From Auanema rhodensis (lineage: Eukaryota; Animalia; Nematoda): a stretch of 64,000 nucleotides of DNA. Location: assembly GCA_964057225.1 (NCBI GenBank), contig OZ059895.1, positions 5,084,001 through 5,148,000 of the forward strand, read 5' to 3'. The position numbers were made by a program, and so were the translations under genes. Below the pieces are notes generated by a model. The model did no database searches and had not been told where the DNA came from. It saw only the letters and a program-made list of their open reading frames with translations. Below are positions 8,463 to 63,300 of the stretch, in pieces (positions within the stretch are counted from its first letter, which is position 1; the number at the start of each line of letters is the position of its first letter).

Positions 8463-10580
8463 CGAAATTTTAAATAAAGAAAGACTTTAAGCAAATAGTT
8501 AGAATGAAGAAATCGCTAGACAAGATAGTTTGTTGCGCATTCTAAAGCTTTAAATATCCCTTCTGACTTCTGATTAACGACCGCCCCATATCAAGATTGG
8601 TGAATTGGTAAAAGAATTATCAAAAACATCCAATGGTTTTCAATTCTTCGCATAACATATGATATGTACTTCCTTAAATTGCGAATTTTGGTAAAACAGG
8701 CAGTTATTTGATTATGAAATCTTCTTTGAACTTTAATTGAGCTCTGTGTACTAGGTCAAAACCTATTAGTCTTCCTTATACGTTCTCAGAGGAATTTTCG
8801 GAAGTGAAAAAAAATGAGTTCATGAGGGGTGTATATAATATATTGTTTAACATTTTTCGTTATTCTTATCTATAACAGTAGATTTAACATTTCAATATTA
8901 ATAGCATTTTGATAAATTTCTTTTCAAATTTCTTTAACTAAGAAATGATATGAGAATTTTAAAGAGATAGAAAAGACATAATAGCTGTATATAAAAAAAG
9001 TTTATTACAATAACAAAAGAACAAAGACTGTATGCTATAAGTGAAAGCAAATTAAACATTGATAACATATAAAGATGACCTAAAATTAATTTTAAACAAT
9101 CCTATGTGAAAAAAAAAGTTCTGAAAAAAGAAAACTGAAGGAAATCCATCACAGCTGAAAGGCGCCCATTGATTATTTAAGAAAACGTTTCTCCAAATCA
9201 CATCAATAACGAATCTGAAGTTTAAAAAGTTAAAAAAGCATAATTCCAGTTTAAAAATAACGTCATCAAGAGAGAGAGAAAGAACTATACAAGGAAATAA
9301 AAGTTTAAGAAGAAGGATGTCTGATTAAATGTGAAATAAACAGTTCAAGGATAAAATCACCTAGAGATCAAGTTATGGTTTTGTATAAATAGTGGCTGAT
9401 ATGCCATTGAAAAGAACGGCAAAACAACTTCGTCAGTTTACATTCCTTTGAACAAAATAAAAAAAATTTAACAGTGAGTAATCGCTGTTGAACAAGAAGG
9501 ATTGTTTAGAAAAGAAATCTGTGAAAGCTTTACTTTCAAAACGTTTGTAAAGAAGTAATATTTTCGATAGAATCAGAAATATCGAATAAGAATAATATAT
9601 TGAATATTATAAAATGTTCTATTGAACAGATTGACTTTTAGAAACTTAAATTCATTACATTTTCGAATTACAAAATAGCTTTCTTTGACATTACTCAACT
9701 GTAAACATTTTTTGGATTACTCTGATTCAGAATATTATCAGTATGTTAGAATTAATAATTCATAGTCATATAATGTGATAAATGTATCGAATCTTCATAA
9801 AGATTGTTCTTGAATATTTGAATGAAGATAGTAGTGACGGTGATTAAATCAGTAAAATAATGTAAATATAATAATAACAGTTAAAAAAAACTTATCAATA
9901 ATTATAGAATATGTTCATAAACAACAAATAAAAATGCACAATCACAAAATATTAACATTCTATATTATCACACTAAACTATTCAGAAGAAGGTACAGAAC
10001 TTTTGAAATAAGATCTGATGGTTTAAACGTCGAAAGCTGTTCAAATATGAATATGATTCGTAAGAATAAACTAGAATGAATCAACCAAAGAAATGTATGA
10101 AATTAATTACACCGAAATACTAGTATAGAAGTTAGAAAACATCTTTGATGCTTGAAATATAATTAGAAAATTATAAACCTAGGAATAATCAGAATGTATC
10201 AACAGATGAAAGATGAAAAGAATGTTCGACCGAGTTGTTGAGCAAGAAGAGAACCGTCCCGAGGAACCAAGAAAAGAAAGATATGAGGCAAAATAGCAAT
10301 AAAACGTATTTTTGACTTTTTTTTTCAATAAAAATCTTCAAAACACGAAAACCCATGGCAATATCTCCAAAATGTTTTCTAATAGAAACATGTCATAGCT
10401 TTAAAGAGTTACGTTATGAGTCAAAAAAAATCTAAAAAATACTTATCAAACGATATGCATGATACAGAAGAACAAGTTCCCGAAATATTGATGCACCATG
10501 ATCATGACCAGAAGCAAGAAATAGCACAAATAAAACCAAAACAATAATAGAAATAAATAAATAAAACCCGCAAAACATAG

Positions 10581-12925
10581 TTAAGTATGCCTTAGTGGTC
10601 GCCCTCCACCGCCATTTCTTCTTTGACCCCCTCTAAATCTGAGGTTAGGCATTCCCCGATTAAAAGTAGGATGGGGTGGGAGAGAATGCGGAGGTCCAAT
10701 AGGCGGAACGTGGTGACGTACACCAAGTGCTGAATTTCCACCACGAGGAGGTCCTTTATGGAGAGGTGGGCGAGACATAGGATTTCGAGGCATACCATGT
10801 CCACGATGAAGAGCTCTTCCTGAAATAGGGCCAGAATGCGCGTGATGATGTCCATTCACTGGGGGTGTATTAGGCGTATACTCGTGATTCATCTTCGGTG
10901 GTGGTTGCGGCGATGAGGCTTCGTGAGACCAAGGTTGGCTTGCGAAATCATGAAGATTAGCACTAGGGTAAGGCGGTCTTGTTTCGGTAGGTTGCGTCCT
11001 GGGAGATTCTGCAGCTTTCCCTCCTATTCCAAGTGCAGAAAGAAGAGCATTAGTAACGGTTTGATTACTGATGGTTGGAACGGGTTTGTCTTCAGCAGAC
11101 CTTGTGCTATTTGAAGGCGTAGGAGGCTTAATTGAATTGAATCCAGAAGTTGGGGTAGAATTCTGAAGAGATCCTCGGTGAGATCCATTAGCTCCTGTAA
11201 GAGGAGTGGACGGGTTTGGCATTTTATTATTTTTAAATGGAGTCAAGTGGCCGGGAGTAGAAGAAATTATTCCATTCATCTCTGCAGACGATGTGTGTTC
11301 AGACACACGATTTTTAATTTCTGGTTTGATATCACATGGACGAAGGGGTGTGATTTTAACATCTAACTTTGGCATATTATTCTGCTGCTGTGGAATGGTG
11401 ATTTTCTTAACCATAATGGTAGGTGGCGTTCCTACCGGTGGCATGATGTTCTGCTGAGGAGGAGGAGGCACATTAGGAGGCGGAACAGGAATAGGCCCGC
11501 CTGTTGGAGGTGGAAACATAGGCATTGGAGGTGGCGGCATCATAGGAGGAGGAGGTTGCATGAAAGGATGAGGCGGCACAGGTACAGCTGTAGGCATAAA
11601 TGAGGGTTGCCTCAATAATGTTTCCTTTTCTTCTTTCTAAAACAAACAAATAGGATAGATAAACATAAATATAAACGTACAACAGGCCAAGGAGGCACTG
11701 AGGTATCCAACTTGCTAGTTGTGAATGACGGAGGACGAGGAGGTGGCTCAATAATGGGAGGTGGTGGTGGGGGTGCAACAACCGGAGACTCAAAATATAC
11801 ATTTAATTTGTTCATGATCTTCAAACTTACGGGAGGTTTCTCTGGAGATAATGAACCGTCCGATACCAATTCCATCTTTACAGACACATTATCCCTACTC
11901 CGTCTTAAATTAGCTAATAAGAACAATTAAATTCCATATGACCACCTTGGAGGTTCTGGGCGAGTAGGAGAAGGCTTGTCATCCTTTTTCTTACTCACTG
12001 ATGATATGATTGCATCTTTAATTTTTTCCAGAAATGTTGTCTGAAATAAGTTACAGCAATGTTTTTTGCCAGCAACGTACCTTTCCCATAGATCCAATAG
12101 CTTCGCTCAATTCAGATCCAAAATACGCTTGCAATTGGGAAACATTCGAACCAGTAAAAGCAGCAACATTAGCGAGATTTGTTTTTTCATCTTCTTGGGG
12201 AGGTAGACTAGGAGGAGTTCGAGGTCCAGGAGATCCAGGAGGAGTCTTCGGTCCCTTTCGTGGAGCTGATGGAGGCGGCTCTTCCATAGGCGGAGTTCGT
12301 GGCCCAACTTTCTCATACTACAACAAATAAAACAAAAATTCGATATCAGCTTACCGCAAATGGTGGAAATATTGCTGAATCAGATTTAACGTATCCTAAA
12401 TTTGGATACGCCTGAAGCCTCCCTTCCATCATTTTATGACCCAATAGTTGGTACATAATACAATCCCTGTTGACAAACTAAATATGAAAAATGTTTCACA
12501 ACAGCAATGATATCTGAAGTTACATCTGCAACCATAGTATTATCCATAGGCATGTTCTCCAGCGCATCTCTAGTCAATCTGCATATTTCTATGCTCGGCT
12601 CTGACTCCTGAGCTATTGCAGCAGCTTCTGCAGCAGCGGCCGCAGCTATTTCTTTTTTTCTTTGTACTTCTCTATAAAAGAAATGAAATTTAAAATAAAA
12701 ACACATTGAACGTCTTACTTCTCCATTTCTTCCATAATAGAATCTAATGGAGCAATTTGATGCCGCAAAGAGCCTGTTGCTTCAGGCTTCTTTTTTCTTT
12801 TAGGTTCCGGTTCGGAAGGAGAATTTCTGTGAAATGAATAATAATAGCATATTTTATGACTGTCAAACTCACTCTCTCCTTTCCTTACTGGTTGTTGGCA
12901 GCATCTTGACACGTTCAGACGACAT
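10581..12925 (-). CDS. Proline-rich, low-complexity, probably nuclear protein of unknown function
   Basis: MSSERVKML..., PKRKKK NLS-like motif, GPRTPP/GPKTPP repeats, a final exon of about 1 kb that is Pro/His/Arg-Gly-rich. It has its own ATG after an acceptor and lies downstream of the DOT1L stop. Confidence 0.7.
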
Positions 12926-26429: not shown

Positions 26430-27783
26430 TCATGCTATTCCCTTTCTAGGCTTGGGACATAAGCAGTACAAAGCATCTTTTCCTTGCTTGCCACTTGGTC
26501 CAGGCTGAAGATTAGCATATTAATTATGAATATTGAAAACGAAAACACTTACTAAACCAACTTGTCCAACTATTCCAGGTGACCCAATTTTACCAGGAGG
26601 TCCCGGAAAACCTCTAACTCCAGGTCTCCCTGGGAGTCCAGGAGGCCCTCTGAAACCCATTTTTCCCGGAGGTCCTTAAAATAAATTAAAATATTACGGA
26701 TATCTAAATAATAACCTTGTTGTCCAGGAGAACCTGGTTGTCCTCTTGGTGCCGGATAAAGCTGACGGAATCCATCATTTCCCGGAGGTCCGTCAGGTCC
26801 AGGCAATCCGGGATAACCTTGAAGTATTTAAATATTTGTGATCTTTTTTCTTAAAATACCTAGAGTTCCTGGATCTCCTGGCGGGCCTGGTGGTCCAGGT
26901 GGTCCAATAATTATATATGAATCAAAGCCAAACTCTCCTGGAGGTCCTGGCGGTCCAGGGGGGCCTGAAAATATATGATCAATGTTCAACAATGGTAAAA
27001 CTCATTGCCTGGTGGTCCCGGCATTCCAGCTGGACATATAATACATTCTAGATCCAAAGCTACGTGAATTCCTGGCTTACCATCAGCTCCATTATCGCCG
27101 TTTTCTCCTGGTTCTGGAATATAAGTCTTAAATAGTCTTGTTATGGTTTTCATATACGGACCACCATCCAACCCTGGTCGACCAGGTGGCCCTGGGGGTC
27201 CTCTTGGGCAAGTTTTTCTATATACAAGTCTGGGTGGTCTAGCGGGGGGTATTTTTGTAATTCTTGAAATAGGAGGAGGGCCGGTAGGGTGTATAACAGG
27301 CTGTGTTGGAGGCGGCAATGGCGGGTTAGCCGATTGAGCTTGAGCTACAGTAACTATAGGATCTGGGTTAATATATTTATTGTTTGATGAATTAAGAACT
27401 CGTGGATTAACATAAGCAGCTCGCCCTAGAGGATGATGCCTCTGATCAAAACGATCACTGAAATGAGAGTGAATAATAAAAAATAGTTTTAAGCTTGAGC
27501 TGACGTAAATCGCTTAGATCTTTGATATAGTGCTTCAGAATTTTCTTTTATGATATCATTCCATGCTTCATTAGTATAGAACTAAAACAATCTTGATAAT
27601 TAGTTATAAAGCTGGAAAAGAAGAAATTATTACCTTGAACTCTATTAAATCTGTCTCAATATCAAGTTGAAGGTTATGAATATCAACAACTATGGAGACT
27701 ATAGTTAAAATACTTGTTATTGTTATTGCGAACGTAACAAACACATAAGCAGAAATAAAATTATCTGTCTTAAAATTAGACAT
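26430..27783 (-). CDS. Nematode cuticle collagen
   Basis: N-terminal TM/Col_cuticle_N region, RSKR furin-type site, interrupted Gly-X-Y blocks, LECIICPAG and terminal YCLCP cysteine motifs. Confidence 0.93.
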
Positions 27784-43971: not shown

Positions 43972-46566
43972 ATGCAAACCATAGAAAAAGCTTTACATCA
44001 ACCTATGCCCTTCACTACTGGAGGGCAAACCATATCCGACAGGTAAACTAAGTTTTTTAATTCAATTATTGATACTCCAAATATCCAAATCCTAGTGTTT
44101 TATTTTCGGCTTTATTGCTAAATATACTAAAAGTTTATGAGTATTCTTTAACTCTTATGTGTATGTACATAAATGTGAGTGTGCTGCCACAGTTTTTGAT
44201 GTTTCATGGGCTTTATCATGCCTTATCAATTTTTTCATACAATTCTTGTCACTATCTTCTGTGTAATCTTCTGTATAGCACGCACCCTATGCAAAAAGCC
44301 ATGCCGTTCAGGTTTTTCGTTCAGTTTTCTGCTAAAACTCATATTATTTCAGATTGACAGCGGCAAAACATTCATTGGCTGGAAGCCAACTAGGAAAGAC
44401 GATATGTAAAGCTACGACAGAGGAGCTGATGGCTCCCAAGAAAAAACATTTGGACTGTAAGTTCAAGCAAATATGCGATCAATACAAATTTTTCATTTTA
44501 AGATCTGTTACATTGTACTAATGAGCCTAACGTTTCAATTCCATCAATGGCTAATCTATTAATTGAGAGGTTTGTCAAATTGTCAACATGCTGTTTTACT
44601 CTCATCTTTAACTTTTCAGAACTCAGCATCCCAGCTGGACTGTTGTATACAAAGCTTTAATTACAATCCATAACATAATGTGCTATGGCAATGAGGTATT
44701 TTTCGGCGTACAAGTGTTTTCCTTGGAGCCTCAACTTTTTTTTCAGAGATTTTCTCAATATTTGGCTTCTTGCAACACAACATTTAACCTAGGAAACTTT
44801 TTGGACAAAAACAGCACTGCTGGTACGTTGAATATTATTAATTTCTTTTACTTCTATATATTCACATAATAGTAGAGTTTTCTCACCATACATTGCTTGT
44901 TGATTTATTGTTTCTTGTTTCTTGAAGCATGTGGTCTAATGCTTTTTGCCTTGGTATTTAGTTTTCATAGTTGTTGTAAAAGTATTCATTCTGGGAACAT
45001 TCTTCTTGTTTCTTCTTCACCATTTTGACTGAACATTAACATTTAACACTTTCCTTTCAAAATAATTAATGTGACTGCATGATTGTGTTGTGTGTAGGCT
45101 TGCGTCGTGAATCCAGTTACAACTATCATATTAATCAAAACCAGGGAGGTTGGTACCCAGGTATGATATCTATCAATTGTACCTCCAAATTTTATGTTTG
45201 CATGTTGCTTATTGTTTACTAACAACTTGTTCTAAATTCTTCCTTTTGCATAGGTTTATATTAGTAAGGTTAGTTTGTTACTTTTTAGGATATGATATGT
45301 CCCAACATGTCCGACGCTATGGAAAGTACATTGGAGAAAAGATTGCAACCTACAGAGTTTGCGCTTTTGACTTTTGTAAAGTAAAGCGAGGTCGCGAAGA
45401 TGGCCTTCTTCGTACTATGCACACTGATAAGGTATTGTAAATGACAGTTTGCTATTTTAATGTGATTAATGGTTGATCTTTCAGTTATTGAAGACTTTGC
45501 CTATTCTTCAAAATCAAATTGATGCTCTTCTCGAGTTTCAAGTTCGTGTTGTAACGGTTGAACTCTTAAATTCTTATTTTTCAGGTATCATCCAGTGAAC
45601 TTAATAATGGAGTTATTAATTGCTCCTTCATTCTTCTTTTCCGCGATCTTATTCGTCTCTTCGCTTGCTATAACGATGGTAATTAACTCTGTAATTATAC
45701 TATTCGAAGTTATCATTTTCAGGAATAATCAATCTTCTTGAAAAATATTTTGATATGAATAAAAAACAATGCCGTGAAGCTTTAGATACTTACAAAGGAT
45801 TTTTGGTGACTACTTTCTAGTTTCAGCAGTTTAAATGTTTTTCACTTTTCAGACTAGATTGGATAAGGTCGCAGACTTTTTGAGAGTAGCTGAATCTGTA
45901 GGAATAGACAAAGGTGAGATTCCTGATCTCACTCGTGCTCCAGCTAGTCTACTGGAAGCTCTTGAAGCTCATTTAATCGTTTTGGAAGGAGGACGCGCTC
46001 CCCCTCCAACTCAACAGGTATGAACCATCATTTCTCTTTCAATTCATAATGTCGTTATTTTGCAGAATTTCCAGTTTCAAAATCAAGTCAACAGCTTTTC
46101 CATTGCCGGAGGTTTCCAAGTAATATTTTCTATAAATCATAATTTAAAGTTTGTTTATTAGTCTCAAGCTCCTGTTAATGATAATGAGAGACAACGCTAT
46201 TTGGAATTGGAGAAAGAAAGACTACGCCAATTTGAAGAGCAAAAACGCCAACAAGGTGTTGGAGGTCCCTCGCAATTCAATCCTTTCGCAGTTGATGCTG
46301 CTGCAGCATCTGGAGCTGCTCCACTTCCAGAGAAAACTAATGATCTTCTTGATTTTTTCAACACCCCAGTGCAGGTTTACTACTTGTACTTCGTCTAAAT
46401 TACTCATATTGTCTATAACTTTTAGCCTAATACAGTTCCTACAACTGATTCAACTAACCCGTTCGCCCAATTCACTTCTGTATCATCCGTGCCACCAGCA
46501 TACCCACCTCTAGGAATTAATAGCAATGGTATGGGCTGATGATTCTATTTCTTATGTTACATATAC

Positions 46567-48503: not shown

Positions 48504-49150
48504 AGTTGACTTAAAATGCAGTAACCGAAGGATATTTGAAATTCCTTTATAGTTTATTTATTTGCCTGCTTATAATTAAACATATATGACAAACAAATAA
48601 GTTTATATAAATTTACGTTTTTAAGTAATCTATGCATAATGTCCTTAGTCCTTAATCTCAGTCAAGTTTTGAAGATTTTTATTTCTTTTAAACATTACAT
48701 GTGCATAACGTTAGATTTTTATGACACTTCTAATCATCACTGTCTCACTTGCAATGGTTGTACTTGAATTTTATATTTATTCAATTTTTAAAATCTTAAT
48801 TTTTTGTATTTTTTCATAGTCCTACCTTCTATTTTCACCGAAAACTTCCTTACTGTCTGCTTTTCCGATGGTTTGTATGCACTGTTTTTTCGAATGTGTT
48901 ATTGTGAAAATAAGTTTCCTTGGAAAATCAAACAATTAGTTCGAAGCATATATTTATATATAGTTTGTGATGTTTTAGCTGCGCAATACATTTTTATAAT
49001 AATCTCTTGTTACTTGATAATATCATTTGTTATTCTCTCATCAAATACGATATCGAAAATGGAGAATCTAAACTGGATCTTAAGATAATATTTCAGCTTA
49101 TCTTTCATGTCTTCGAAATTTTCAATTGTGTACAGAGGTTTGAACTTACA

Positions 49151-50294
49151 ATGTCAGAGACACTTTTCGGTAATTGTATATACGTTATTGAATCTGAAAA
49201 CTTTGTTATTCCTTTGAAGGCTAGGCTTCCATCGCCCGAGCTTAGAGAGGTTTTAAACAAATGGAAGGGAGGCAATGTATCTCTTGTTGGTGATGGCCCA
49301 GTTCATCGAATGGTACTTGATAGGCCGGATAAATTTAACTGCATATCTGGAGAAATGGCTTTGAAGATGGGTGCTGTTGTTAACGTTTGCTGCTGTTAGA
49401 TCATACTCGAATAGTCTATGCACTTTCTAGAATCTTCCAAATTTACTACCAAACTCAAGCATTGTTGTTGTTGAAGGTTTAGGTAAATCGTTTTGCAGTG
49501 GAGCTGAACTAGGCATGATCGACCAGGTTTTGAACGGGATTCACTAAAATCACAATAGATAATGCCACTTGCAGCTTAGCACATCTGAAATGGGATCACA
49601 TCTTTATGCATACATGTCTTCAGTGTTACGAGAATTGCACCAATCTCCACAAATAGTAATAGGAAAGCTTCATGGTCATTGTTTGGGAGGTGGAACTGAA
49701 ATTGCAAATGCTTGTGACTTGAGAATTGCTCATAAAAATGTGAAGGTAACTAATTATTCAATGAGATTCTGAGAACTCTGCATTTCTTTTTAGATTGGCT
49801 TTATTTACACGAAAATTGGAATCACTCCTTCGTGGGGCGGAGCTTTATGGCTTGCTGATATTGTTGGTCGATCAACAGCATTAAAACTCATGGCTAAAGC
49901 TGAAATAATTGGTTTTTTGATTCAAAAAATATAATTTTCATGAATTCTCATTTCAGATGCGGAAGAAGCAAAACGCATTGGATACGTAAATGAAATTTAT
50001 GAAACTGAAGAGGAAGCTGAGGTATGAATTGATTTACTATGTTCATTGATCAGATATTTGAATTTGTTTAGGAAATTATAAAGTCTTATACACATTCATA
50101 TCCATACGTGACCAGAGCTCAGAAAAGTATGTTATTTGCGGTCAAATGTGGATTTGAAAAAGAAGATGGTTTGTTGAAAATTGAATAAAGTTTAATAAGG
50201 ATTCAATAATTCTTTAGAGGTTATACGATCTGTTTGGGGTGGTGAAGCACAAACTAAGGTATTTGAAGCAATTCGAAATAAAGGAAAGAAATGA
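49151..50294 (+). CDS. ECHDC1: Enoyl-CoA hydratase/isomerase family, ethylmalonyl-CoA decarboxylase-like
   Basis: NCISGEM, FCSGAEL, GHCLGGGTEIANACDLR, GITPSWGG and SVWGG motifs. Confidence 0.82.
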
Positions 50295-51098: not shown

Positions 51099-54000
51099 TC
51101 AAGAGTATTCTATCTTCTCGATTTTGAGGGAATTGTCGTCAAAACATTTCGTATAATCAGTCCACATCATGTATCCATTACTTCTAAATATCCTGTAATA
51201 TAAAGAAATAATTGAAGTAAACATATTGCTGATTATACTTCTGTGTTTCACTAGAATGCAGAGTATGGGCTACATCTTTTGTCAATACTTTATAAATAAA
51301 TTCGATTCTTCTAAAAATAAGTTATTATTTTCCTTTATTTTCAGATGTTTTGTGGTTTTTTTGGCACAAATAAACTCACACTGTTAGATTTTTTAGGTAC
51401 TCATTAAAATCATAAACATCATAAGACACTGAATTTAGAAAGATATGAAAACCGTAAAATAAATCTTCTTCGGTTTTTGCTGGAGTTGGATTTTTCTAAA
51501 GTTTAGTTATAAGAGGGTTGAAATGAGATAAACTTACAGTCGTTTGTGGTGTATTATGTATTGCAATTATTTCTTTCCATAAATAATACAATTGTAGATC
51601 AAAGTCAATGTCTACCCAAGGATTATTTGTTTCTTTTTCAGAGTTAACGTTGGGAAATAGCTCAGTAGCTGCATATCCCAACGAAAGTTTGCAAATGTTC
51701 TTAGGCATAATTTCTGTTACTGGAATCATTCTTTGGAAGAATTTCGTTCCATCGATTTCATAAAGTTCATGTAATCTTTGTTTCACATGACAAACTTTTG
51801 GGTATGCTTGTTCATATAATTGGATTAATATCTGAATTAAGAAATTTTGATTAAATTTGAATTCAAAAGAAACTTACATTCCGAGGAATTTTACTGGTTT
51901 CTGAATTTGTTTCAACTCTCATTAAAACTCTGAAAGATATGCCATAGTAATGAAATATATTTCTTAGCATGTAAGTAATTCAAGAATTAAAACTTACTTA
52001 ACATGTTCCCAAGTTGCAAATAGTCGAAATAGGTTTAAACGTAATTCAAACGGAAGTGGCAGTTTATTGGTGCTTTTTTTATTTTTATTTGAACCTTTCT
52101 GAAAGAAAAACTATAATTATGAATTAATAACCTTGAGAGATAAGTTATAAAGTACTAGCAAACATAGTTTTAAGAAAATGATTATGATTTTTAATATTAT
52201 TTCAAACATATTAAGCTTACTTCTGGCAGATCAGCATTGTCGTCGTCTTCACTATTATAATTTTCGTCTAATATGTTGTAGTCCACTAAAAGAAATTCAA
52301 TATAAGTGATAAAAACATTAATTAAAGCTAACTCATTCTTACTGAATCAATTTTCATCAGAAAAGCAAAATTTATAAATTTTACTAGGTTTTTGAGACAT
52401 CTTTCGAATATGAATTTCAGTTTTGAAGAAGGATATATACTAGAATCTCTTTTGCTGTGTGACGCTTTAAACACCTGATTGAAAAGCTATAAAAAAATTA
52501 TATGTTTTATAATATTTACAAGATTATACTTACATCAAACGCTACTACCGGTACTGTTAGTTTCGTTTCGTCGTCATCTTCGAAATTAGATGAAGAATTA
52601 TGAATGAAAAGCATATGTGTTTCTAATAGTCGCAATAATTCAATCAAATATACATTATAAAAGTATTCTGCCCTTATAATCGTATTCTCTCCTTTAGCTA
52701 AAGAGTCCACATTTCGGAAATCGTGACGTCGAATCTTAGGTGTTTCACGAAGTATTTTGAAAAATTCGCTGCATCCAGTTATTGTTTTCTTAATAATTTC
52801 AGTCTCAGTATTTGTTTCTGAGCTTTGAACTGAACAGTTGAGATGTGCAAGGAATGCTTTGAACGTTTTGTGGAAATCAGCTATAAACAATGCTGTTGAT
52901 AATTTTTGAATATGTCCAGGAGTATTTTTAGAAAGATCATTTTGACGTATTAAACTGTGCAAAATTGAAGAATGACTATTCTGAATATTTTCCAGAAATG
53001 CCGCACGAATATATGAGTTTTGTACTTTATCACGTACACCGTTGTTAACAGGACTTGCCGGAGTAGAGTTAGGCTCAGCTTTGATATAATAATACAGTTC
53101 TGACATTTTCTCTTGAAAGGTGTTTACAGCATTCTCATAGCCTGCTTTGATATTAGGTAGTTCTTCAAGCTTCAAATTTTTGCTTTCAATGTCACAAGTT
53201 ATAAAAAGTAGTTCATCCCAGAAATTTTCCAATTCCGAAGATTCATATTCAGATATCTTCATTGTTAGCACTAAAATTCCTGATTCTTCAGTAATCTTCA
53301 GTTGTCCTTCAGCTTTTAATTTCGTTCCTACGTAATAAGCTTTAACGTAGTTCCGGTTTAATATATCAAACACTGCTTCTTCAATAAGTTCTGGAGTTAA
53401 AGACAGTGAATAGTCAATCGGTAGTAAAAAGTCGATGTTGAAGCCATAGGTACAAACTTCTCCATAGACATAAAGCCTAAACACTGTCTTTTCTTGATTT
53501 AATGATTTGATGATGTTGAATATGTGCAATCTGACATCAGAACACACTGGAATCCAGGCAACCGGAGATGTTGGTAAATCTATGACTTCAGATCTAACAC
53601 CACAAGACACTGGAAACCGAATATTCGTTGATTGAACATCCGGGACTCTATGGCCGCTAGCTTGGGAAGCTATCATATTTGGTACAGGAGAGGGCAATGA
53701 AGATCCTACGCTTGACGCTTGAACTTGAGCAACTCCAGAGATGGGAATTTGATTAAATCTTGATGTTGTAATATTTTCTTGATGATACGAAGAAGCACAA
53801 ATGTTTGTTGGATGAGCTGCTATCTTTGGTGGAATATAGAAAACACCTGGTTGCCCAATTGTTGAAGCATGTCGATCAGGAACTGTTAGAGCGGAACGTG
53901 GATTGTTATTGCTCGAAACTTTTGAAACTTCTGTGGGAGTGGCAGCAGTCATCTGTTTTAAGACTTCCTGAAATAAGAAGTTAATTTAACTAATATGATA

Positions 54001-57000
54001 TATCTTACATTGTTTGTAGAATCCTTTTCACTTTCCTCAATGGTTTGCCTTTGTGATTGATTGTCATTTTCTTCCAAACTTTCGATCTCTGATATATCAA
54101 TGTATAAAGCATCATCAATAGATGAAGCGTCATCATTGTCTGCTTCTTTGTTATCATCAGTAGGATAGTTGAGAGATTCGGCAATAGGTTCAGATTCTAA
54201 TTCATTTTCAACGAAATTAGGCTCAGTAGGAGTAATTGAAGCAGGAGAAGACTGCATTGAACAAACAGTTTCATTGGCACAAGCTCTCACTCTCTTAACT
54301 AACGATTCCGATGATATGTATTCTGAAAAATGAAAAAATTACGTCTATGAATGAAAAAATCTCAAACTTTGTTCCCATTCACTGATTTGATACAACTTAG
54401 AAAACATATTAATCGGGAAACAATCGAAAAACTGTTTCGGAGAAAGTCGAGAATTTGGTTGAGGAATGAGCGACTTGATTCGTAGTTTTCTTATTTCATA
54501 CGAAATATGTTCATGAGATTTGAGCAAATGAGCATTTAATCGTTGTACTAACATGAAGCCAGAACTGAGAACATTTTCTTCAGCAATGAAGCTATCTCTC
54601 AATGTATTTCGTCCAAAACGTCTTAATATAAAAAAAAATTAAAATTAGAAAATAATTTAGTTATAAAAAAGAATTTTTATAACTTTTATAAGATATAATA
54701 TATTACTTTGATCTGGTATTCATCTCTTTTTGTTGTTGTTGAATCCATTTTTCATTGTAAATATGTATTTGTTGACGATTAAGAATTATATAGTGAGAAA
54801 GAATTTGGAGAAGTTCAATCATATAGTCATCTTCATAACCATTTTGAGCATAAGTTTCAGCTGTTTCATATAAATATTTGGCGAGTTTCAACAAAGATTT
54901 ACTACGATAATCAAAACTTTCTAAATATATAATTAAAATTATTTTATAAATATATATATAAACTTACGAAAAAGATCAAATTCTTGTTCAGTTTGAGGTC
55001 TAACTTCAAAATGAACATTTTTATTTGTTTCAATAACTAAAATATTAAAATATAATTTCAAATAATATTAATTATAACTTGCCTGGTTTTATTTTTTCCA
55101 TATCTTCATTTGAAATATAAAGATGTTTTAAAAAGAATGTTGTTATAAGTTGTAATAATTGATGTCTTTGCTCTGATGTAGATTGAACAAGAACAGTACT
55201 TAATATTATTTTTAATTGACTTCCTTGTGCAAATACATGTTCAAGATCTTCATCCATTTCCAAATCAAGTATTGAACCTTTTTTACTTTTATTACAACGT
55301 GCTTAAAATAATTTTTTTAAAATTATATTAATATTAAAAATAAAGATTAGTAGATTTATACTATATATACCTGAACGTTTTCTAAATCCTGATGCACTTA
55401 TTATAAATTTAGCAATTTGAGGCAGTTCCAGATGAAAACAATTGTATTTTCGCTAAAAAAATAATTTTTTATTATAAAAATATTTAATATAATTACCTCA
55501 AATGCCATTTCTGGACAATATGATGCTCTATCTATGAGCTTGTATAGGATCATTTGGTCGTCATCTTTCTCAAGTTCAAGCATGTTGTTTGAAATATTCA
55601 CATAATCAAGATCAGCATGTTCTGATTTGATAGCAGAAAATTGAAATTTGCATTTCTTATTTCCATATAATAAATTATGGAAATCTTTCATCTTATCTTC
55701 ATCTTTCATATCAGAATTGATTCTCAGAAGTTGGAAATATTTCTTTAATACTTCTATAAAAATAAAATTTTAATCATTTATTTTTTTTTTAATTCCTTAC
55801 CATCTTGTTGATATTTATCACTTTCTGTTATTTCTTTATTATTTATATAATTATTTAAATGATCCAATTCTGATGGACTTGGTTCAGGAACTAATATTCC
55901 AATATTCAGAAACTTTTCAATAACATAAGGATTTTTTAGAATTGCATGTTTTGCAAGTTTCACAGGATCAAGTACACTGCTGAAATCTCCCTGAAAATAA
56001 GATTATCAAATAATTAAAAATATAAAAAAATATATTTACTTACAATCATCAATTTATATGGAATATCATATGAATCTTTTTTAAAGAAACGAACTAAGAT
56101 ATTCATTTCATCCATAGTCTAAATTATATTTTTAATATCAAAATTATTTTTATTCATATCATTATACTTACCAATTTGTCTACGTATTGCATATTCTTTT
56201 TTTCTTCTTTTGGTTCTTCCTTTAAATAAAAATTATTTTTTTATTCAAAACTTTCAAAGTTTTTGAATTCTTTAATTCAAATCGTTTTTCAAAATTTTTT
56301 CTTACCTTTAAGTTTTCCGATTCTTTTTTTAAACTGGATATTACTTCGTCAATACTTGATATCATGCCGTACATTGTGGATTTTCTTTTGACAAATTCAT
56401 AATCATTCCAGAATTTCAACTGTTTGATTAGTAAAATCTATACAAAAATTTAAATATTAATTTAAATTTAATGTTAAACAATTGAAAACTTACTCCTGTT
56501 CCCATTGGAATCATTTTTTCAGTGTCATCAGTCAACAAAACTTTGTAAACTATGCAACGACCACAAGAATCAACATCCAATATTTCTTTTACCTAAATAT
56601 TATAAGAAATTATTAAGTAATCTTTTGAATTTATTAAGTCTTACTTGATCAAAATTAGTAAAATCGATGTCGATATCAAGAGTAGTTCCCTAAAAATTAT
56701 AAATAAATAATAAATATTTTATTTCTTTCTATATATACCGATGATTCATCGTCTGAGCCGACATCACAAATTTCAATTTTGGTTCTATTGATGTAAGCAG
56801 TTAAGTTCAATGTCATTTTGCGATCAATTGAATCAGATGCTAAAGACATTCTGATCCAATAGTTAGTTGCCATACTGTATGCTTGCTAATAATAATTATT
56901 ATTATAAATTATTTATATATTTCAAGTTATACCACACAATTCGCATATTCCCAGCTTTTAGAACATCCCATCCATTGAACATTGTAAATTAATTTATCAT

Positions 57001-57141
57001 CTTCCGGTATTACATTTTCAATTCCCATTATCTAAATTATATATATATACAAGTATATATGTATATATATAAGTTAATATCTTAACATACCGGATAATAT
57101 GAGCTTTCTACATCTCTGGTTGTAACTACCAGATGAACCAT
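51099..57141 (-). CDS. Large (roughly 1,500 aa) protein with N-terminal divergent tandem chromodomains and an unknown helical C-terminal region
   Basis: YYP|IMGIENV...IYNVQWMGCSKSWEYANCV and FDQ|VKEILDVD...VYKVLL chromo-like exons. About 20 exons with canonical junctions, including one of 1.4 kb. I checked frame continuity at only some of the junctions. Confidence 0.65.
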
Positions 57142-57957
57142 TGTTGAAACAGTTCACTTAAATCAAGTATTATTTCCAAATTTTATTTTATAAAATAATT
57201 ATTTTAAATTTAAATTATTATTTAATTCTAAATAATAAAAAAAAGATCTGCAGGATATCAAATATTTTCTTAGTTGGATATTTGATAAAATTATTATTTT
57301 TCATAATTTATTATAATATTTAATTAATTTTTAAATAAAAAATACTGTAAATACCTGTTGTAAAAGATCAGAATCTCCAAATTTGAGACGGTTAAACTTC
57401 TATTTATCAATATTGATGTTTTAAAATTGATATAAAAAAGTTTTTTATGGTTTTAAGCCTGAAATAAAAATTAAATTTCATCATAATAAAACATATTTGG
57501 ATATATATTTAAATATTAAATTACTGTAATTAAACAGATTATTATTAAATGAAAATAATATTTTTTAATTTGATTATGAAATTATATATAAACTACATCG
57601 TTTTTTTTTACAAAAAAAAGATAAGAAGAAGAGACTAAATCAACTATATAACAACAATAAAGAAATAATTAATATTTACAAAATTTAAATTATAAAGGCA
57701 AGTTATATGACATAATTATAATAAAATGAAAAAAAAAAACATTTGACTAATGATAATGACATAGTTCATAGATGATAATACTTTTCTGAGATACATTGAA
57801 AAGACCATTTAAAGATTCAAAGAGACTAGTTGTTGATATTAACGAAAATTCTTGAAAGAAAAAAAAGAACAAGGGATAGAAGAAAGAGAAAAGTAAAATG
57901 CTGCCGTAGCACATGGAAATGCCATCTGAGGGTCAACTGAATGCTTTATACCGAAAT

Positions 57958-57996
57958 AAATGGGCGGAGCTTCAAGCTAAATTCAAATGGGCGGAG
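57958..57996. promoter_or_regulatory. Duplicated AAATGGGCGGAG GC-box-like motif
   Basis: Two exact 12-mers (57958-57969 and 57985-57996) in a small GC island, about 0.8 kb upstream of the 57141 ATG. Confidence 0.5.
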
Positions 57997-59050
57997 ATTA
58001 GTAATGAGTTGACATTACATTCAAATCCTGGTGATATCAGGTAATTAAAGGATTAAGTCATATGATATTGACTATAATATAATAGTTAATGAGATAGATC
58101 AAAGATGAGATCAATCCCTTGGAGTAATCCAGCAAAATAAGTGAAAACCCCTTCGTATCATTTAAGTAATATAGAAATAAAAGCTCGCAAATTCAAATAG
58201 CATATGATTTATGACAAAAATTAATTTTTTGAACTTAATTTGTTTAATTTCAAAATAATTATGACTAAAGGAATTATATATGGAAATTGATAAATTATTA
58301 TTTATGAAAATAAAAAGTAGAAGTTTAAGATATAATTCAATTTCTTTTTTTTTAATAAAAACTAATGTTTTATTAATTATTATGTTTATATTTTGAATAA
58401 AAAAAAAAGAAATTTCTTTCTTTTTTAAATTTTTTTCCAAAAGAGCAAGTTTTAATTTTAAAAAAAAGTTCATATGATATGTGATGGTGAAGTTGTAAAT
58501 AGAAACAACAAACATAGATTTTTACTGCAAAATGTTGTGTTTTTCTGAATTGGAATAATTTTTTTTTAAAGAAAAAGTTTGAAAGAACGAAGAATATGAT
58601 GATGATACATACATACATACATAGTATATGTATATTTGTATTTAAGATAAAACAACAACAACAACAACAATGTAGAATAGACTTCTTTTTTTTTTTTAAA
58701 AAAACTTTTAAAATTACTTATTATAATCAAAGTTATGATTACAGTATATTTTCTATTTTGTTTTATAAAAATTCTAATTATAAGCATTGTTGGTAAGTGA
58801 ATAGGATAGAAAAGGTAAAAGATTTGTGTGTTACCTAGTAACAGGAATGAATAATTGCTTCATCAAAAGGAATTAATTCCAATGATATTGGAAAGATGAG
58901 AAGATATTTCTAATAAAAATTTTGAAAAATTTTTAGAAGATGAATGTTTGGAAATAAATTCGAGGAATGAATCAAAGCAGTTCGTCATATGGAAAAATAT
59001 TTTTTCAGATATTATGCTCTGCACTTTTCGTCTTTAATATTTTCTGTGTT

Positions 59051-60346
59051 TTATGGCTTTTCCATTTCTTCAAGCTCTTCGCTATGCTTAGAGCTTTCTA
59101 ACTCATCATTCTGTTCTGATTCTTCGTGTTCTCCGGCATCTTCATATTTTTCCGTCTCATCTGGCTCTTCCGATGTGTCATGGGATGTTGTGTTTTCAGC
59201 AATAGGTTGTGATTCCTCATCGGGCAGTTCCGAAATTTCCAAATCTTTGTAGGATGTTGTAATCTTTGGATTTTTGATTATAACATCATTTCCAAGAGCT
59301 TCAACATCAGGATCGAGATTTTCATAGATATTTAAGCCAATTGTTCGTCTGAGTAGGCGAATTCCATTCATAAGAAGGGGAAACATTACATCAAAGCAGA
59401 CAACCTTTGATGGAAAAGGTAATACTGATTTGGACATGAAAGCATTGTAGATGTATTGAGCAATACCAATACAATACGGTATTAATATGTGAAGAAACCT
59501 GTTGACAAATCGAATAATTTCAGGCATATCTTCAACCTGAAATGATAAACAAATCAGCTTAACTATTAAAGTTTGAAATGTTCAACATACTTTCAACTTT
59601 TTCAAGTAAATCCAGCGAAGCTCGTTTGGTGTATTTTCAATTTTGCACAATAACCAGATACGTTGTCCCATACGACGAATGTCCATTACAGTTTCAATCT
59701 ATAATATATTTAATATGATTGTGTTATGATTGAATATATTTACTTTAGGACGTGTAATAACATATTCCGTTTGTAATTTTAGCTGAAATTCTGGAGTTTG
59801 AGCTTCTTCTTCAAGCCTGCTGATCAATACTGCACATCTTCTTTGAACCATTTCAAATACAAAATGCTCACGCATTTCAAGTGCTGAGTTACCAAACCAA
59901 AACCCCCAAAAATCGTCGATTTTTTCCGAACAATTCTAAAAATATTTGAATGAGTCATTCTTTTTCTTATTTTTTCATAATACTCACACATTCTTCTTCA
60001 GAGATGTAAGAGTTTTCAAGATGGGAATATCCTCTCCAGCTTACTTGATATGAGATCTTACCATCAGTAATTCGACAGTCAATAACCCGTTCAACCTAAA
60101 TAAGAACATATTTGGTATTAAACATTTATGAAATTCATCTATTACCTCATAATGACCGAGGCCATCTTCATCAATGAGTACGAGATTAGTTAGTGGCAAA
60201 TGTGTTGATGTTGTTACTGCCGTTGAAGTCTCCTCTCGTGTTCGTTTCACCGTTCTTGTTCCTGGTGATTGTCTTTGCCTCTGACGACGTCGCTTTAATA
60301 CGGTAGATACTATAGAGTCATCGTCATCCTTAGCTCTAGGAGTCAT
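59051..60346 (-). CDS. Double chromodomain (or chromo plus chromoshadow-like, HP1-like) protein, 364 aa, 5 exons
   Basis: Exons 60346-60146, 60095-59988, 59935-59744, 59698-59591 and 59536-59051, all introns phase 0. HYE|VERVIDCRITDGKISYQVSWRGYSHLENSYISEEEC|NCSEKIDDF is a canonical chromodomain. Confidence 0.85.
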
Positions 60347-63300
60347 CTAAAATAAACTTTTATTGTAAAAAGGATATTGAAAGGATATTTGATTAAAATT
60401 GGAAAATCTAATTTTAAAAATAGTTTCTCTCTTCCTCTTAATACCGTAATCTCTCACTTCACTTTTAGGAAAACAGAGATGTTGAATGAAACAAAAAGAT
60501 GAGAAATGGTAGTTATCTGTTCATGTGTAAATGGTAAAAGGCAATTTTTTCTGTTTGGAAAACTCGAAAACTGTTCTGACTCATGAACATAGACAAAAGA
60601 AATTGTAATGGCCTTCTGATAGTTGGGGTTCCAAAATTTATGAGACCAAAGAGAAATGGTGAGGAAGCAGAATAAAAACATTCGTAACCGATGTTGGTAG
60701 CAGAATGTTCTTCTCTTTTTTTTTGTTAATTTTCGGCTATGAGAGAACGAATAGATGTTAAGACTGCAATTGTTTGTGGCTCAATTGCTGTATGAGGTTG
60801 TGAACTATTGAAAAGAAAGAAATAACCAGCTGATAGAAGAATTAGAAGTAAAGATTCAAAAAGAACAAAAAATTAAAAGAGAGAAAGAGAGAATAAAAGA
60901 AAAAAAGATGGAAGAAAGGTTGAGATGAGCGATTGGCGGTTAATATGGAGTGCAGATGTTGGGAAGGATTTTGAGAAAACCCTGACGCACAGATTGCGGT
61001 CTTGTTTCGCAATAGGAGAAGAGAAAAGTAAAAGATTCGATTGAACATGTAAGAAATTGAATGAGAAAAATAAAAAAAAAGATGAAGGGGAGGTAAAGGA
61101 GGAGAAGTAAAGAAGAGTAATGAGGAGGGAAAAGTGTAGTTGATGAAAAAGAAAGAGATAAAGGACACAAGAGACGAATCATGTTTGATGACAAATCTTT
61201 GGTTATGAGTTGTTTTATACTGACTTATTAGCTTCTACTTAACTTCAATGTTATGTCTAAAAGTATATAAAGTGTGGTTGAAGTGGAGTACCAAAAATGG
61301 TATGCGAAATGATCAAAACTGAGATGAGAGGCTCAATCCAAAAGGGGGGGGGGACTCGAAGAGGCCACCACATGTGAGAAGAGTGCTCACATTATGTCAA
61401 AAGGGTAATTACGTAATAGCGTCAAATGGTTCAATAAATATGAATTGCCCGATGAAACGAAGCTGTATTGGTGGTCTGACATAGCTTTCTTCAAAAAAGA
61501 ACGAATGAGTTTTTAGAAGGCACGGAGTAGAGAAAGCAGTTGAGTTTGAATGTAAGAAGATGGCAAATCAAAGCCAGGTATATGCGAGAACGACTATAGC
61601 AAAACAAGTAGAGAAGTTCTAACTTGTTCTTCCTGCTTCTTCAGTGTTTGATCTTTTCATATAACCATAACAGGTAGAATGTTATTATATGACTTGAGCT
61701 CTTTGATTTTGAATAAAAAAAAAGTTGAAAAGAATCAAATTACATATTCCTTTCCAAAACATTAAATAAACTAGATAGAAAAGAATTCCATTAATAAAAA
61801 AAAATTTTCATTCACTAAAGATTTTTATTTTTTTAATATTTAAATATTCATAATTAAAATAAAATATTATATTTATCTTTTAATATAATATATGTATATT
61901 ATACAGTAATTCTATATTTTTGTTTATATGATTAAATCTTTTAAAATTTGAGAGATAATTCTTCATATTTTTGGTGTCATCTATCACACATCTGTACTCT
62001 TAATGACCACAAAAATAATTTTTTTTAATATATTAGTTGAATTTCTGTAATTTTTAACTTTCTTTTATCTATAAAACGTATAAGTAGATGAAAGAACACG
62101 GGAATATTGAAGAAACATAAGAGAGAGAGAGAGAGAACGATGTCTCAATCAACCCCCTAATATGAAAATTTTTTGCAAAAGTTTGTTTTCTTCATAATAA
62201 TAAATATAATTTGTTCATAAAACTAATAATATGTTGATAAGATGAAGCTAAGATTGCTCAATGGTCGTAAGATAGGTAGTCTCAGTGGAAATATCGTGGT
62301 CTACAGGGATTTATTCAATTTCCATCAATGAAAATACTAAATGAAGAAGGAATTATTTTTTTTTTATTGAGAAAAAAAGAAAATTTTTTTGAAAATAAAA
62401 TGAAAAATTATAGATTATAGCTATAGATAGATATATTATTTGTAAGTATATGGTTAATAAAAGTTATTATTAATTATTCTCTGTTAATTTCCTTTTTGGT
62501 AAATTGAGTTGGATTTCGTGATCAGAGAGCTTTTATCTTATATTATACATTCTACTCATAGAGTTTTCATCGTGTGAGGGTAGGAAATGACATAAGGAAA
62601 TAGGTATACGAAAGGGGAGGAGGTACGATAATGACCCAGCTTAGGATATGAAGAGAGAGAGAGAGGGGAATGAGATAGGAGGAACGATGAGGATTAGAGG
62701 ACAACGGAGATGAAAAAGGAAGATTGGGAAATACAGAAAAAGGAAAACTGAAAGATATAGAGAGAAAGGGATTGAAACTAGAATGCAATTCATTTTCAAA
62801 GTAAATGAAGTCCAGCATTCTAGTCTTATGAACATCTCTTAGGCTGCTCCACATTACTCTTATACAGCAGATTTCGTCCAGAAACTTCATGATAACGTTG
62901 TATAAGCCAAGCGCAGAAAATAGCAAATGAATACGATTTTACTTTAAACTAACAAACCAAACTTATTTGATTCATGAGTAATCCCTTCTATAGTTCAATC
63001 TCCTTCCTCTTCACACTCACTTTCTCTCTCATTCAGGTCTTCTCATCATTCGGCTATTTCCAAGGCATTGCATAAAGGAAATAAAGCACAGAATAAGCTC
63101 ATTACTAAAAGGAAGAGATGTCAGTAACGAACATTGAAGCAATGAAAGATTCATTTTGACGTCGCTATATTCCTTTAGAATTAAAAAGAATATTATTTGA
63201 ACTTGTGAATCTCAATAGGCTCCTGAGTTCCGGCGGTAGCTTGTATATATAGCTTTGAAATAGCTATACATTCATATTATTCTTCATCAAACTAATTTTA

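Follow-up and report, generated by a model that had tools for sequence, protein, structure and literature searches.

HP1 proteins are usually small, conserved adaptors, and those of Caenorhabditis, HPL-1 and HPL-2, consist of a chromodomain, a linker and a chromoshadow-type domain in this order. We describe here two neighbouring genes of the nematode Auanema rhodensis, gene A and gene B, which appear to have the same domain order. They lie in a stretch of 64,000 nucleotides (nt) of contig OZ059895.1 (NCBI GenBank assembly GCA_964057225.1, positions 5,084,001 to 5,148,000 of the forward strand), to which we refer as the window and in which all coordinates below are counted. It is probable, in our judgement, that A and B are two tandem, very diverged genes of the HP1 family, each encoding a chromodomain, a linker of 64 amino acids (aa) and a chromoshadow-like domain devoid of aromatic cage, and that they come from a tandem duplication.

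The likeness to HPL-1 and HPL-2 includes the second module of both genes, which is nearest in sequence to the HPL chromoshadow domain, and the aromatic cage of the first module, which is intact in gene B. The differences are that the pair has other introns, no basic hinge and no match with Pfam Chromo_shadow, and that gene B carries a tail of 160 aa and gene A an extension of 1,400 aa. The young HP1 paralogues of Diptera, which diverge strongly and often have germline roles, belong to a different phylum, and we know of no HP1-headed protein as large as the product of gene A in that family. The dipteran HP1 genes (Rhino, HP1D/E and others) form a family which expands recurrently, according to PMC6188558. 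In C. elegans, the chromodomains of CEC-4 and CEC-5 bind methylated H3K9 peptides in vitro, many chromodomain proteins have no defined human homologue, and the CEC chromodomains have been aligned with those of human HP1 and Polycomb (cited part of PMC9988841). The CEC proteins are set beside A and B by description, and no second, chromoshadow-like module is described for them in the cited part of that article.

Like the pair, CHD1 and CHD4 possess two chromo-type modules with a helical linker, of about 60 aa, between them, and they are the top matches, although weak ones, of the structural search reported below. They differ from it in three respects: no SNF2 helicase was found in the pair, the first module of gene B is of the HP1 class and the second modules are nearer to the chromoshadow domain. 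SUV39-type methyltransferases are characterized by a SET domain. In agreement with the original prediction, neither a helicase nor a SET domain was found in a Pfam scan of eight large exons of gene A (1,054 of its 1,558 aa) and of the last exon of gene B.

Exon architecture common to the two genes

Both genes were modelled from the sequence, as follows, together with the linkers that separate their two modules:

60346-59051, minus strand: gene B, 5 exons, 364 aa
57141-51099, minus strand: gene A, 25-exon model, 1,558 aa
59744..59935, minus strand: linker exon of gene B, 192 nt or 64 aa, hydrophobic and acidic
56645..56885, minus strand: linker of gene A, two exons of 147+45 nt or 64 aa, acidic

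The exons of gene B (60346-60146, 60095-59988, 59935-59744, 59698-59591 and 59536-59051) are separated by four introns of 45-54 nt each, all of them GT-AG and in phase 0. The predicted protein starts with a basic tail resembling a nuclear localization signal (KRRRQRQRQ...KRTRE), after which come the chromodomain, the 64-aa linker, the chromoshadow-like module, some hydrophobic helices and a C-terminal tail of acidic character (36% D+E). A transmembrane anchor in this protein was considered and rejected, the best hydropathy window of 19 residues reaching 1.57 for a cut-off of 1.6. The ATG of gene B comes straight after TTATTTTAG (60346-60355), which resembles a nematode trans-splice acceptor of SL1 type.

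The N-terminal exons of gene A (57141-57091, 57031-56933, 56885-56739, 56689-56645 and 56592-56494), all in phase 0, encode an HP1-like head (residues about 15-165), after which come about 1,400 aa without detectable relatives. Exons 12, 15 and 18 of this gene are each followed by a weak donor (GC, GTTTGA and GTTAGC, respectively), and these three joints are uncertain. Were the joint of exon 18 wrong, gene A could end near 52328, which would exclude the final ~260 aa.

All four intron positions of gene B recur in gene A, which has one extra intron, situated in the linker. The four shared phase-0 positions had been proposed in the original prediction, and every one of its junction peptides was reproduced in our rebuilt models: with a slash for the intron, they are HYE/VER, EEC/NCS, RPK/IET and KLK/VED in gene B and YYP/IMG, NCV/QAY, FDQ/VKE and GTG/ILL in gene A. 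The same holds for the length of the linker, which is 64 aa in one exon in B and 49+15 aa in A, for the [FY]W at linker positions 9-10 (FW in B, YW in A), and for the great inequality of the C-termini, since the tail beyond the second core measures 161 aa in B and about 1,411 aa in A. Moreover the two core exons have equal lengths within each gene (108/108 nt in B, 99/99 nt in A), and the distance from the intron to a Y-x-V-x-W motif is the same in A and B (15 residues). No similarity between the two linkers was found in a comparison of their sequences.

The G+C content of the exons far exceeds that of the introns in gene A (0.325 versus 0.152) and in gene B (0.383 versus 0.209). The window as a whole has a G+C of 32%, and its introns are short (41-122 nt), with TTTCAG or TTTTAG at their 3' ends, which together with the collagen-like open reading frame listed below points to a nematode. 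Indirect support for the models comes from four runs of RNA type, which contain 0.56-0.57 of the sampled 31-mers of the stretch: with expression of both genes and splicing according to the models, the computed fraction is about 0.53 plus untranslated regions, and with expression of gene A alone it is about 0.43-0.45.

We mapped the introns of C. elegans hpl-1, C. brenneri hpl-2, zebrafish cbx3a and a Danaus HP1 (the latter for its 3' half alone). In hpl-1 and in C. brenneri hpl-2 one intron lies 7 aa ahead of VEKV, two others follow KWQ and the chromodomain helix, and another precedes (F)PSQVI. More generally the mapped HP1 genes have their chromodomain, where it was mapped, cut after KW(Q/KGFT) and their chromoshadow domain cut within the core or just before the last helix. 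In zebrafish cbx3a (8708-10668 of the record of this gene, not of the window) both domains are cut at the corresponding place, straight behind the KW in strand two, a symmetry within the gene whose position differs from that of A and B. None of the four A/B intron positions was found to coincide exactly with an intron of these four genes, the closest case being the hpl intron before (F)PSQVI, which is 3-4 residues off the KLK/VED junction of gene B. Hence the architecture common to A and B is specific to them. Since the genes share this architecture and are adjacent on one strand, a tandem duplication of an intron-bearing ancestor can be proposed. This ancestor would already have carried the four phase-0 introns, and its two copies would then have diverged fast.

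The four proposed chromo-type modules

The modules, numbered 1 and 2 in each gene, are located as follows:

59906..60160, minus strand: B1, HP1-type chromodomain, residues about 63-113, interrupted by the first two introns
56856..57099, minus strand: A1, degenerate chromodomain, core exon of 99 nt at 57031-56933 with its flanks
59480..59698, minus strand: B2, chromoshadow-like, 108-nt core exon plus the next helix PEIIRFVNRFL
56390..56592, minus strand: A2, chromoshadow-like, 99-nt core exon plus the next helix LKFWNDY

B1 is, as judged from its sequence, a chromodomain of the HP1 class and not of the CHD class. It matches Pfam PF00385 Chromo (E 3.7e-13), its best PDB matches are CBX3, CBX1, CBX5 and Drosophila HP1 (E 8e-9 to about 1e-8), and hhalign gives 98% for it against the HP1 chromodomain profile of vertebrates and insects. 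We built the vertebrate/insect HP1 profiles from 81 proteins and the nematode profiles from HPL-2 and HPL-1 of C. elegans together with eleven further HP1 proteins of the genus Caenorhabditis. An approximate query, which shared 94% identity with the hpl-2 entry of the database, served to retrieve these HPL proteins. B1 scores 43 bits with the vertebrate/insect profile and 13 bits with the Caenorhabditis profile. The aromatic cage is intact (Y66, W87, Y90). The core exon of B1 aligns without gap with the HP1 chromodomain, from VEK to ENL, so that the start of the exon can be used as a register fixed beforehand.

In this register, the gapless alignment of A1 with B1 over the first 20 residues has p<2e-4 (5,000 shuffles); in another comparison of the cores the similarity had p about 1/2000. 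On a position-specific scoring matrix (PSSM) of the animal HP1 chromodomain, A1 ranks 3/1538 among the positions of gene A, with its peak at shift 0, and the best match of a nematode chromodomain hidden Markov model (HMM) in the whole of gene A falls at A1. At the cage columns of a MAFFT alignment A1 has Y16, W37 and C40. The cage of A1 is thus weakened, with a cysteine in the last place and two aromatic residues where HP1 has three. When the 20 columns of the HP1 chromodomain PSSM are shifted from -8 to +8 along the four cores, each core is positive solely at shift 0, and the summed gapless score between core exons of different modules has p<2e-4 (5,000 shuffles). From exon starts and over 20 residues, the pairs A2-B2, B1-B2 and B1-A2 give p=0.0014, p=0.004 and p=0.0016.

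The closest affinity of both second modules, in terms of sequence, is with the chromoshadow domain of Caenorhabditis HPL-1/HPL-2. Searched without filter against the whole of A and the whole of B, the Caenorhabditis chromoshadow HMM makes a single match in each protein, and these two matches are in A2 and B2: residues 135-143 of A (TDDTEKMIP) fall on tDdtarLip, and residues 174-188 of B (IRRMGQRIWLLCKIE) on lTkapgeLHFLckFt. They put the start of the core exon on the same column of the profile, in a common register. The motif of A2 corresponds to SDDTARLLP in HPL. On a gapless PSSM of 33 columns of the Caenorhabditis HPL chromoshadow domain, A2 ranks 1/1525 and B2 1/331 among the positions of their proteins, with a shuffle p=2e-4 in both cases and a sharp peak at shift 0. 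Over these 33 columns A2 scores 17.8 on the chromoshadow profile versus -6.5 on the chromodomain profile. When A2 and B2, each with its helix, were aligned locally and freely with seven chromoshadow domains, the p-values were 0.004 and 0.008, respectively, two control segments being null, and the hhalign score with the Caenorhabditis chromoshadow profile was reached by 0/60 shuffles for A2 and by 2/60 for B2.

No aromatic residue is present at the cage positions of the second modules (0/3 in each gene). The pair appears to have the domain order of HP1 itself because module 2 has no cage and has its best affinity with the HPL chromoshadow domain. This shows a weakness of the original prediction, which saw in each gene a double chromodomain, as far as this meant two readers of methylated lysine. 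What the sequences probably describe is an architecture of HP1 type, neither two reader chromodomains nor a new class of readers. The proposal of a lineage-specific reader family survives in part: the pair looks lineage-specific, and the new reader class has to be given up since the domain order appears to be that of HP1, A1 keeping two cage residues out of three.

We made a single-sequence AlphaFold (AF2) model of the head of B, in which module 2 appears, with low confidence, as strand-strand-strand-helix and the linker is predicted to be helical. The top matches of this model in Foldseek are all chromodomain proteins, the tandem chromodomains of CHD1 and CHD4 coming first, with E 0.04-0.1, none better than 0.04, and a root-mean-square deviation of about 21 A for a model whose mean predicted local distance difference test (pLDDT) is 42.5. 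With VIA-align, residues 162-202 of B (108-148 of the model) are superposed on the chromodomains of CBX, Polycomb and CDYL2 with 1.4-2.6 A over 37-40 residues (Z 2.4-2.7). These model-based matches can be taken as hints.

Weighing of the explanations

Several observations weigh against the assignment of the pair to the HP1 family. In Pfam A1, A2 and B2 have no match with Chromo or Chromo_shadow up to E 10; a phmmer search of PDB gave no relevant match for any of these three modules either. With the vertebrate/insect profiles of chromodomain and chromoshadow domain, A2 and B2 remain at the null level in hhalign, and B2 scores about equally on the chromodomain and chromoshadow PSSMs. Shuffling erases the periodicity of strands, and our p-values are therefore somewhat generous for strand-rich segments. 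The linkers of both genes are acidic or hydrophobic, and do not show the basic, flexible character of the HP1 hinge; the original prediction was right in calling the linker of B, which has no basic hinge, unlike that of HP1. The mean pLDDT of the model of the B head is low, and even the certain chromodomain B1 is poorly modelled in it. Finally the splice junctions of A and B are predictions made from the sequence.

The similarity between modules could also be explained if the pair were a family of tandem chromodomains, such as CHD1, CHD4 and cpSRP43, in which a symmetric phase-0 chromodomain exon would have been duplicated within the gene, without any derivation from an HP1 chromoshadow domain. 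This would account for the equal lengths of the core exons within each gene and for the similarity of B1 with B2 and with A2. B2 does reach 18.5 on the HP1 chromodomain PSSM, the second-best score among 344 positions in B, the next being 3.6, and the helical prediction for the linker and the first places of CHD1 and CHD4 in Foldseek, in spite of their E and of the pLDDT of the model, go in the same direction. However, A2 and B2 contain motifs specific to the Caenorhabditis chromoshadow domain (TDDTEKMIP and LLCK), and A2 scores very differently on the two PSSMs. The missing cage residues of module 2, the HP1-class sequence of B1 and the lack of a helicase domain in the exons scanned with Pfam also speak against it, and we consider this origin rather unlikely. 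One can suppose, on the other hand, that gene B alone is a chromodomain gene and that the N-terminus of gene A is unrelated, its resemblance being coincidental or its gene model wrong. It is true that neither A1 nor A2 is matched in Pfam or PDB, that the hhalign score of A1 with the chromodomain profile is equalled by 6/100 shuffles, that two unrelated positions of gene A outscore A1 on the chromodomain PSSM, and that the junctions of this gene are predictions from the sequence. But chance would then have to produce a similarity of the A1 and B1 cores with p about 5e-4 to <2e-4, the same spacing of 15 residues between intron and Y-x-V-x-W, a linker of 192 nt in both genes, and the first rank of A2 on the chromoshadow PSSM, all this in two genes which are adjacent on one strand. 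We hold this to be improbable.

An old tandem duplication followed by strong divergence, which had been the original proposal, is still the simplest reading of the derived exon architecture shared by A and B and of the similarity of their cores (A1-B1 and A2-B2). In accord with the original prediction, neither hpl-1 nor hpl-2 has a simple one-to-one counterpart in the pair: the intron positions of A and B differ from theirs, no close relative of residues 45-264 of B was detected in a word-index search, and exon 17 of gene A (see below) is without match. No further copy of the pair was found by tblastn within the 64-kilobase window.

Extension of gene A, surroundings and possible roles

One exon of the extension of gene A, and the features of the neighbourhood, are the following:

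52534..53967, minus strand: gene A exon 17, 473-478 aa, a part rich in serine and proline, then a region of predicted strand-then-helix structure
57958-57969 and 57985-57996, minus strand: CTCCGCCCATTT in two exact copies, 2 matches versus 0.12 expected
10581-11615, minus strand: proline-rich open reading frame of 344 aa, located where the G+C of the window is highest (0.41), without Pfam match
26986-27318, minus strand: collagen-like open reading frame, Gly-Pro-Pro repeats and a motif typical of nematode cuticle collagens
45150-45440, plus strand: exon resembling AP180/ANTH-type proteins, by eye
49007-49399, plus strand: exon resembling enoyl-CoA hydratase, by eye, without Pfam match as a single exon

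An exhaustive HMMER search of 1.84 billion cluster representatives gave 0 matches with E<=0.001 for exon 17 of gene A, and neither a Pfam match nor a neighbour in the ESM Atlas was obtained for it. The AF2 model of its domain, with a mean pLDDT of 38.7, was left out of the fold search. A search of positions 1-57000 of the window with Rfam returned nothing. The two copies of CTCCGCCCATTT are at a distance of 27 nt from each other and lie in the AT-rich spacer, some 0.8 kilobases upstream of the ATG of gene A; they may represent a candidate promoter element, in which case a first exon without coding sequence may lie downstream of them. The spacer between genes B and A also contains, at 58600-58700, short (GTT)n and (TATG)n microsatellites and long runs of A/T.

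As to function, gene B most likely binds methylated lysine of the H3K9me type, a role that we propose because its aromatic cage is intact. Its second module would most likely mediate dimerization or the binding of partners, as chromoshadow domains do, and the basic stretch at its N-terminus probably serves for nuclear import or for contact with nucleic acids in place of the basic hinge. More speculatively, gene A might be a scaffold which is recruited to chromatin either by its own head or by pairing with B.

One may go further and imagine that the pair is a lineage-specific heterochromatin module which marks or handles repeat DNA bound for elimination, B being the reader and A an HP1-headed scaffold pairing with B through the chromoshadow-like domains; we regard this as very improbable. 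The chromodomain protein Pdd1p, in the DNA elimination of ciliates, would be loosely comparable. Massive programmed DNA elimination occurs in Auanema rhodense (preprint 10.64898/2026.08.27.747507), and the preprint contains no mention of chromodomain or HP1 genes.

The pair is unusual in several respects. Three of its four chromo-type modules have diverged so far that Pfam, PDB sequence searches and standard profile comparison with hhalign no longer recognize them; the basic hinge is replaced; and in one copy the HP1-like head begins a protein of about 1,558 aa, the remainder of which has no detectable relatives. In terms of method, the intron register combined with a clade-specific profile recovers domains that general libraries miss. 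If the assignment of A and B to the HP1 family is confirmed, it would mean that HP1 diversifies recurrently and rapidly in nematodes, as it does in flies, and the two genes would be concrete candidates for lineage-specific functions in heterochromatin.

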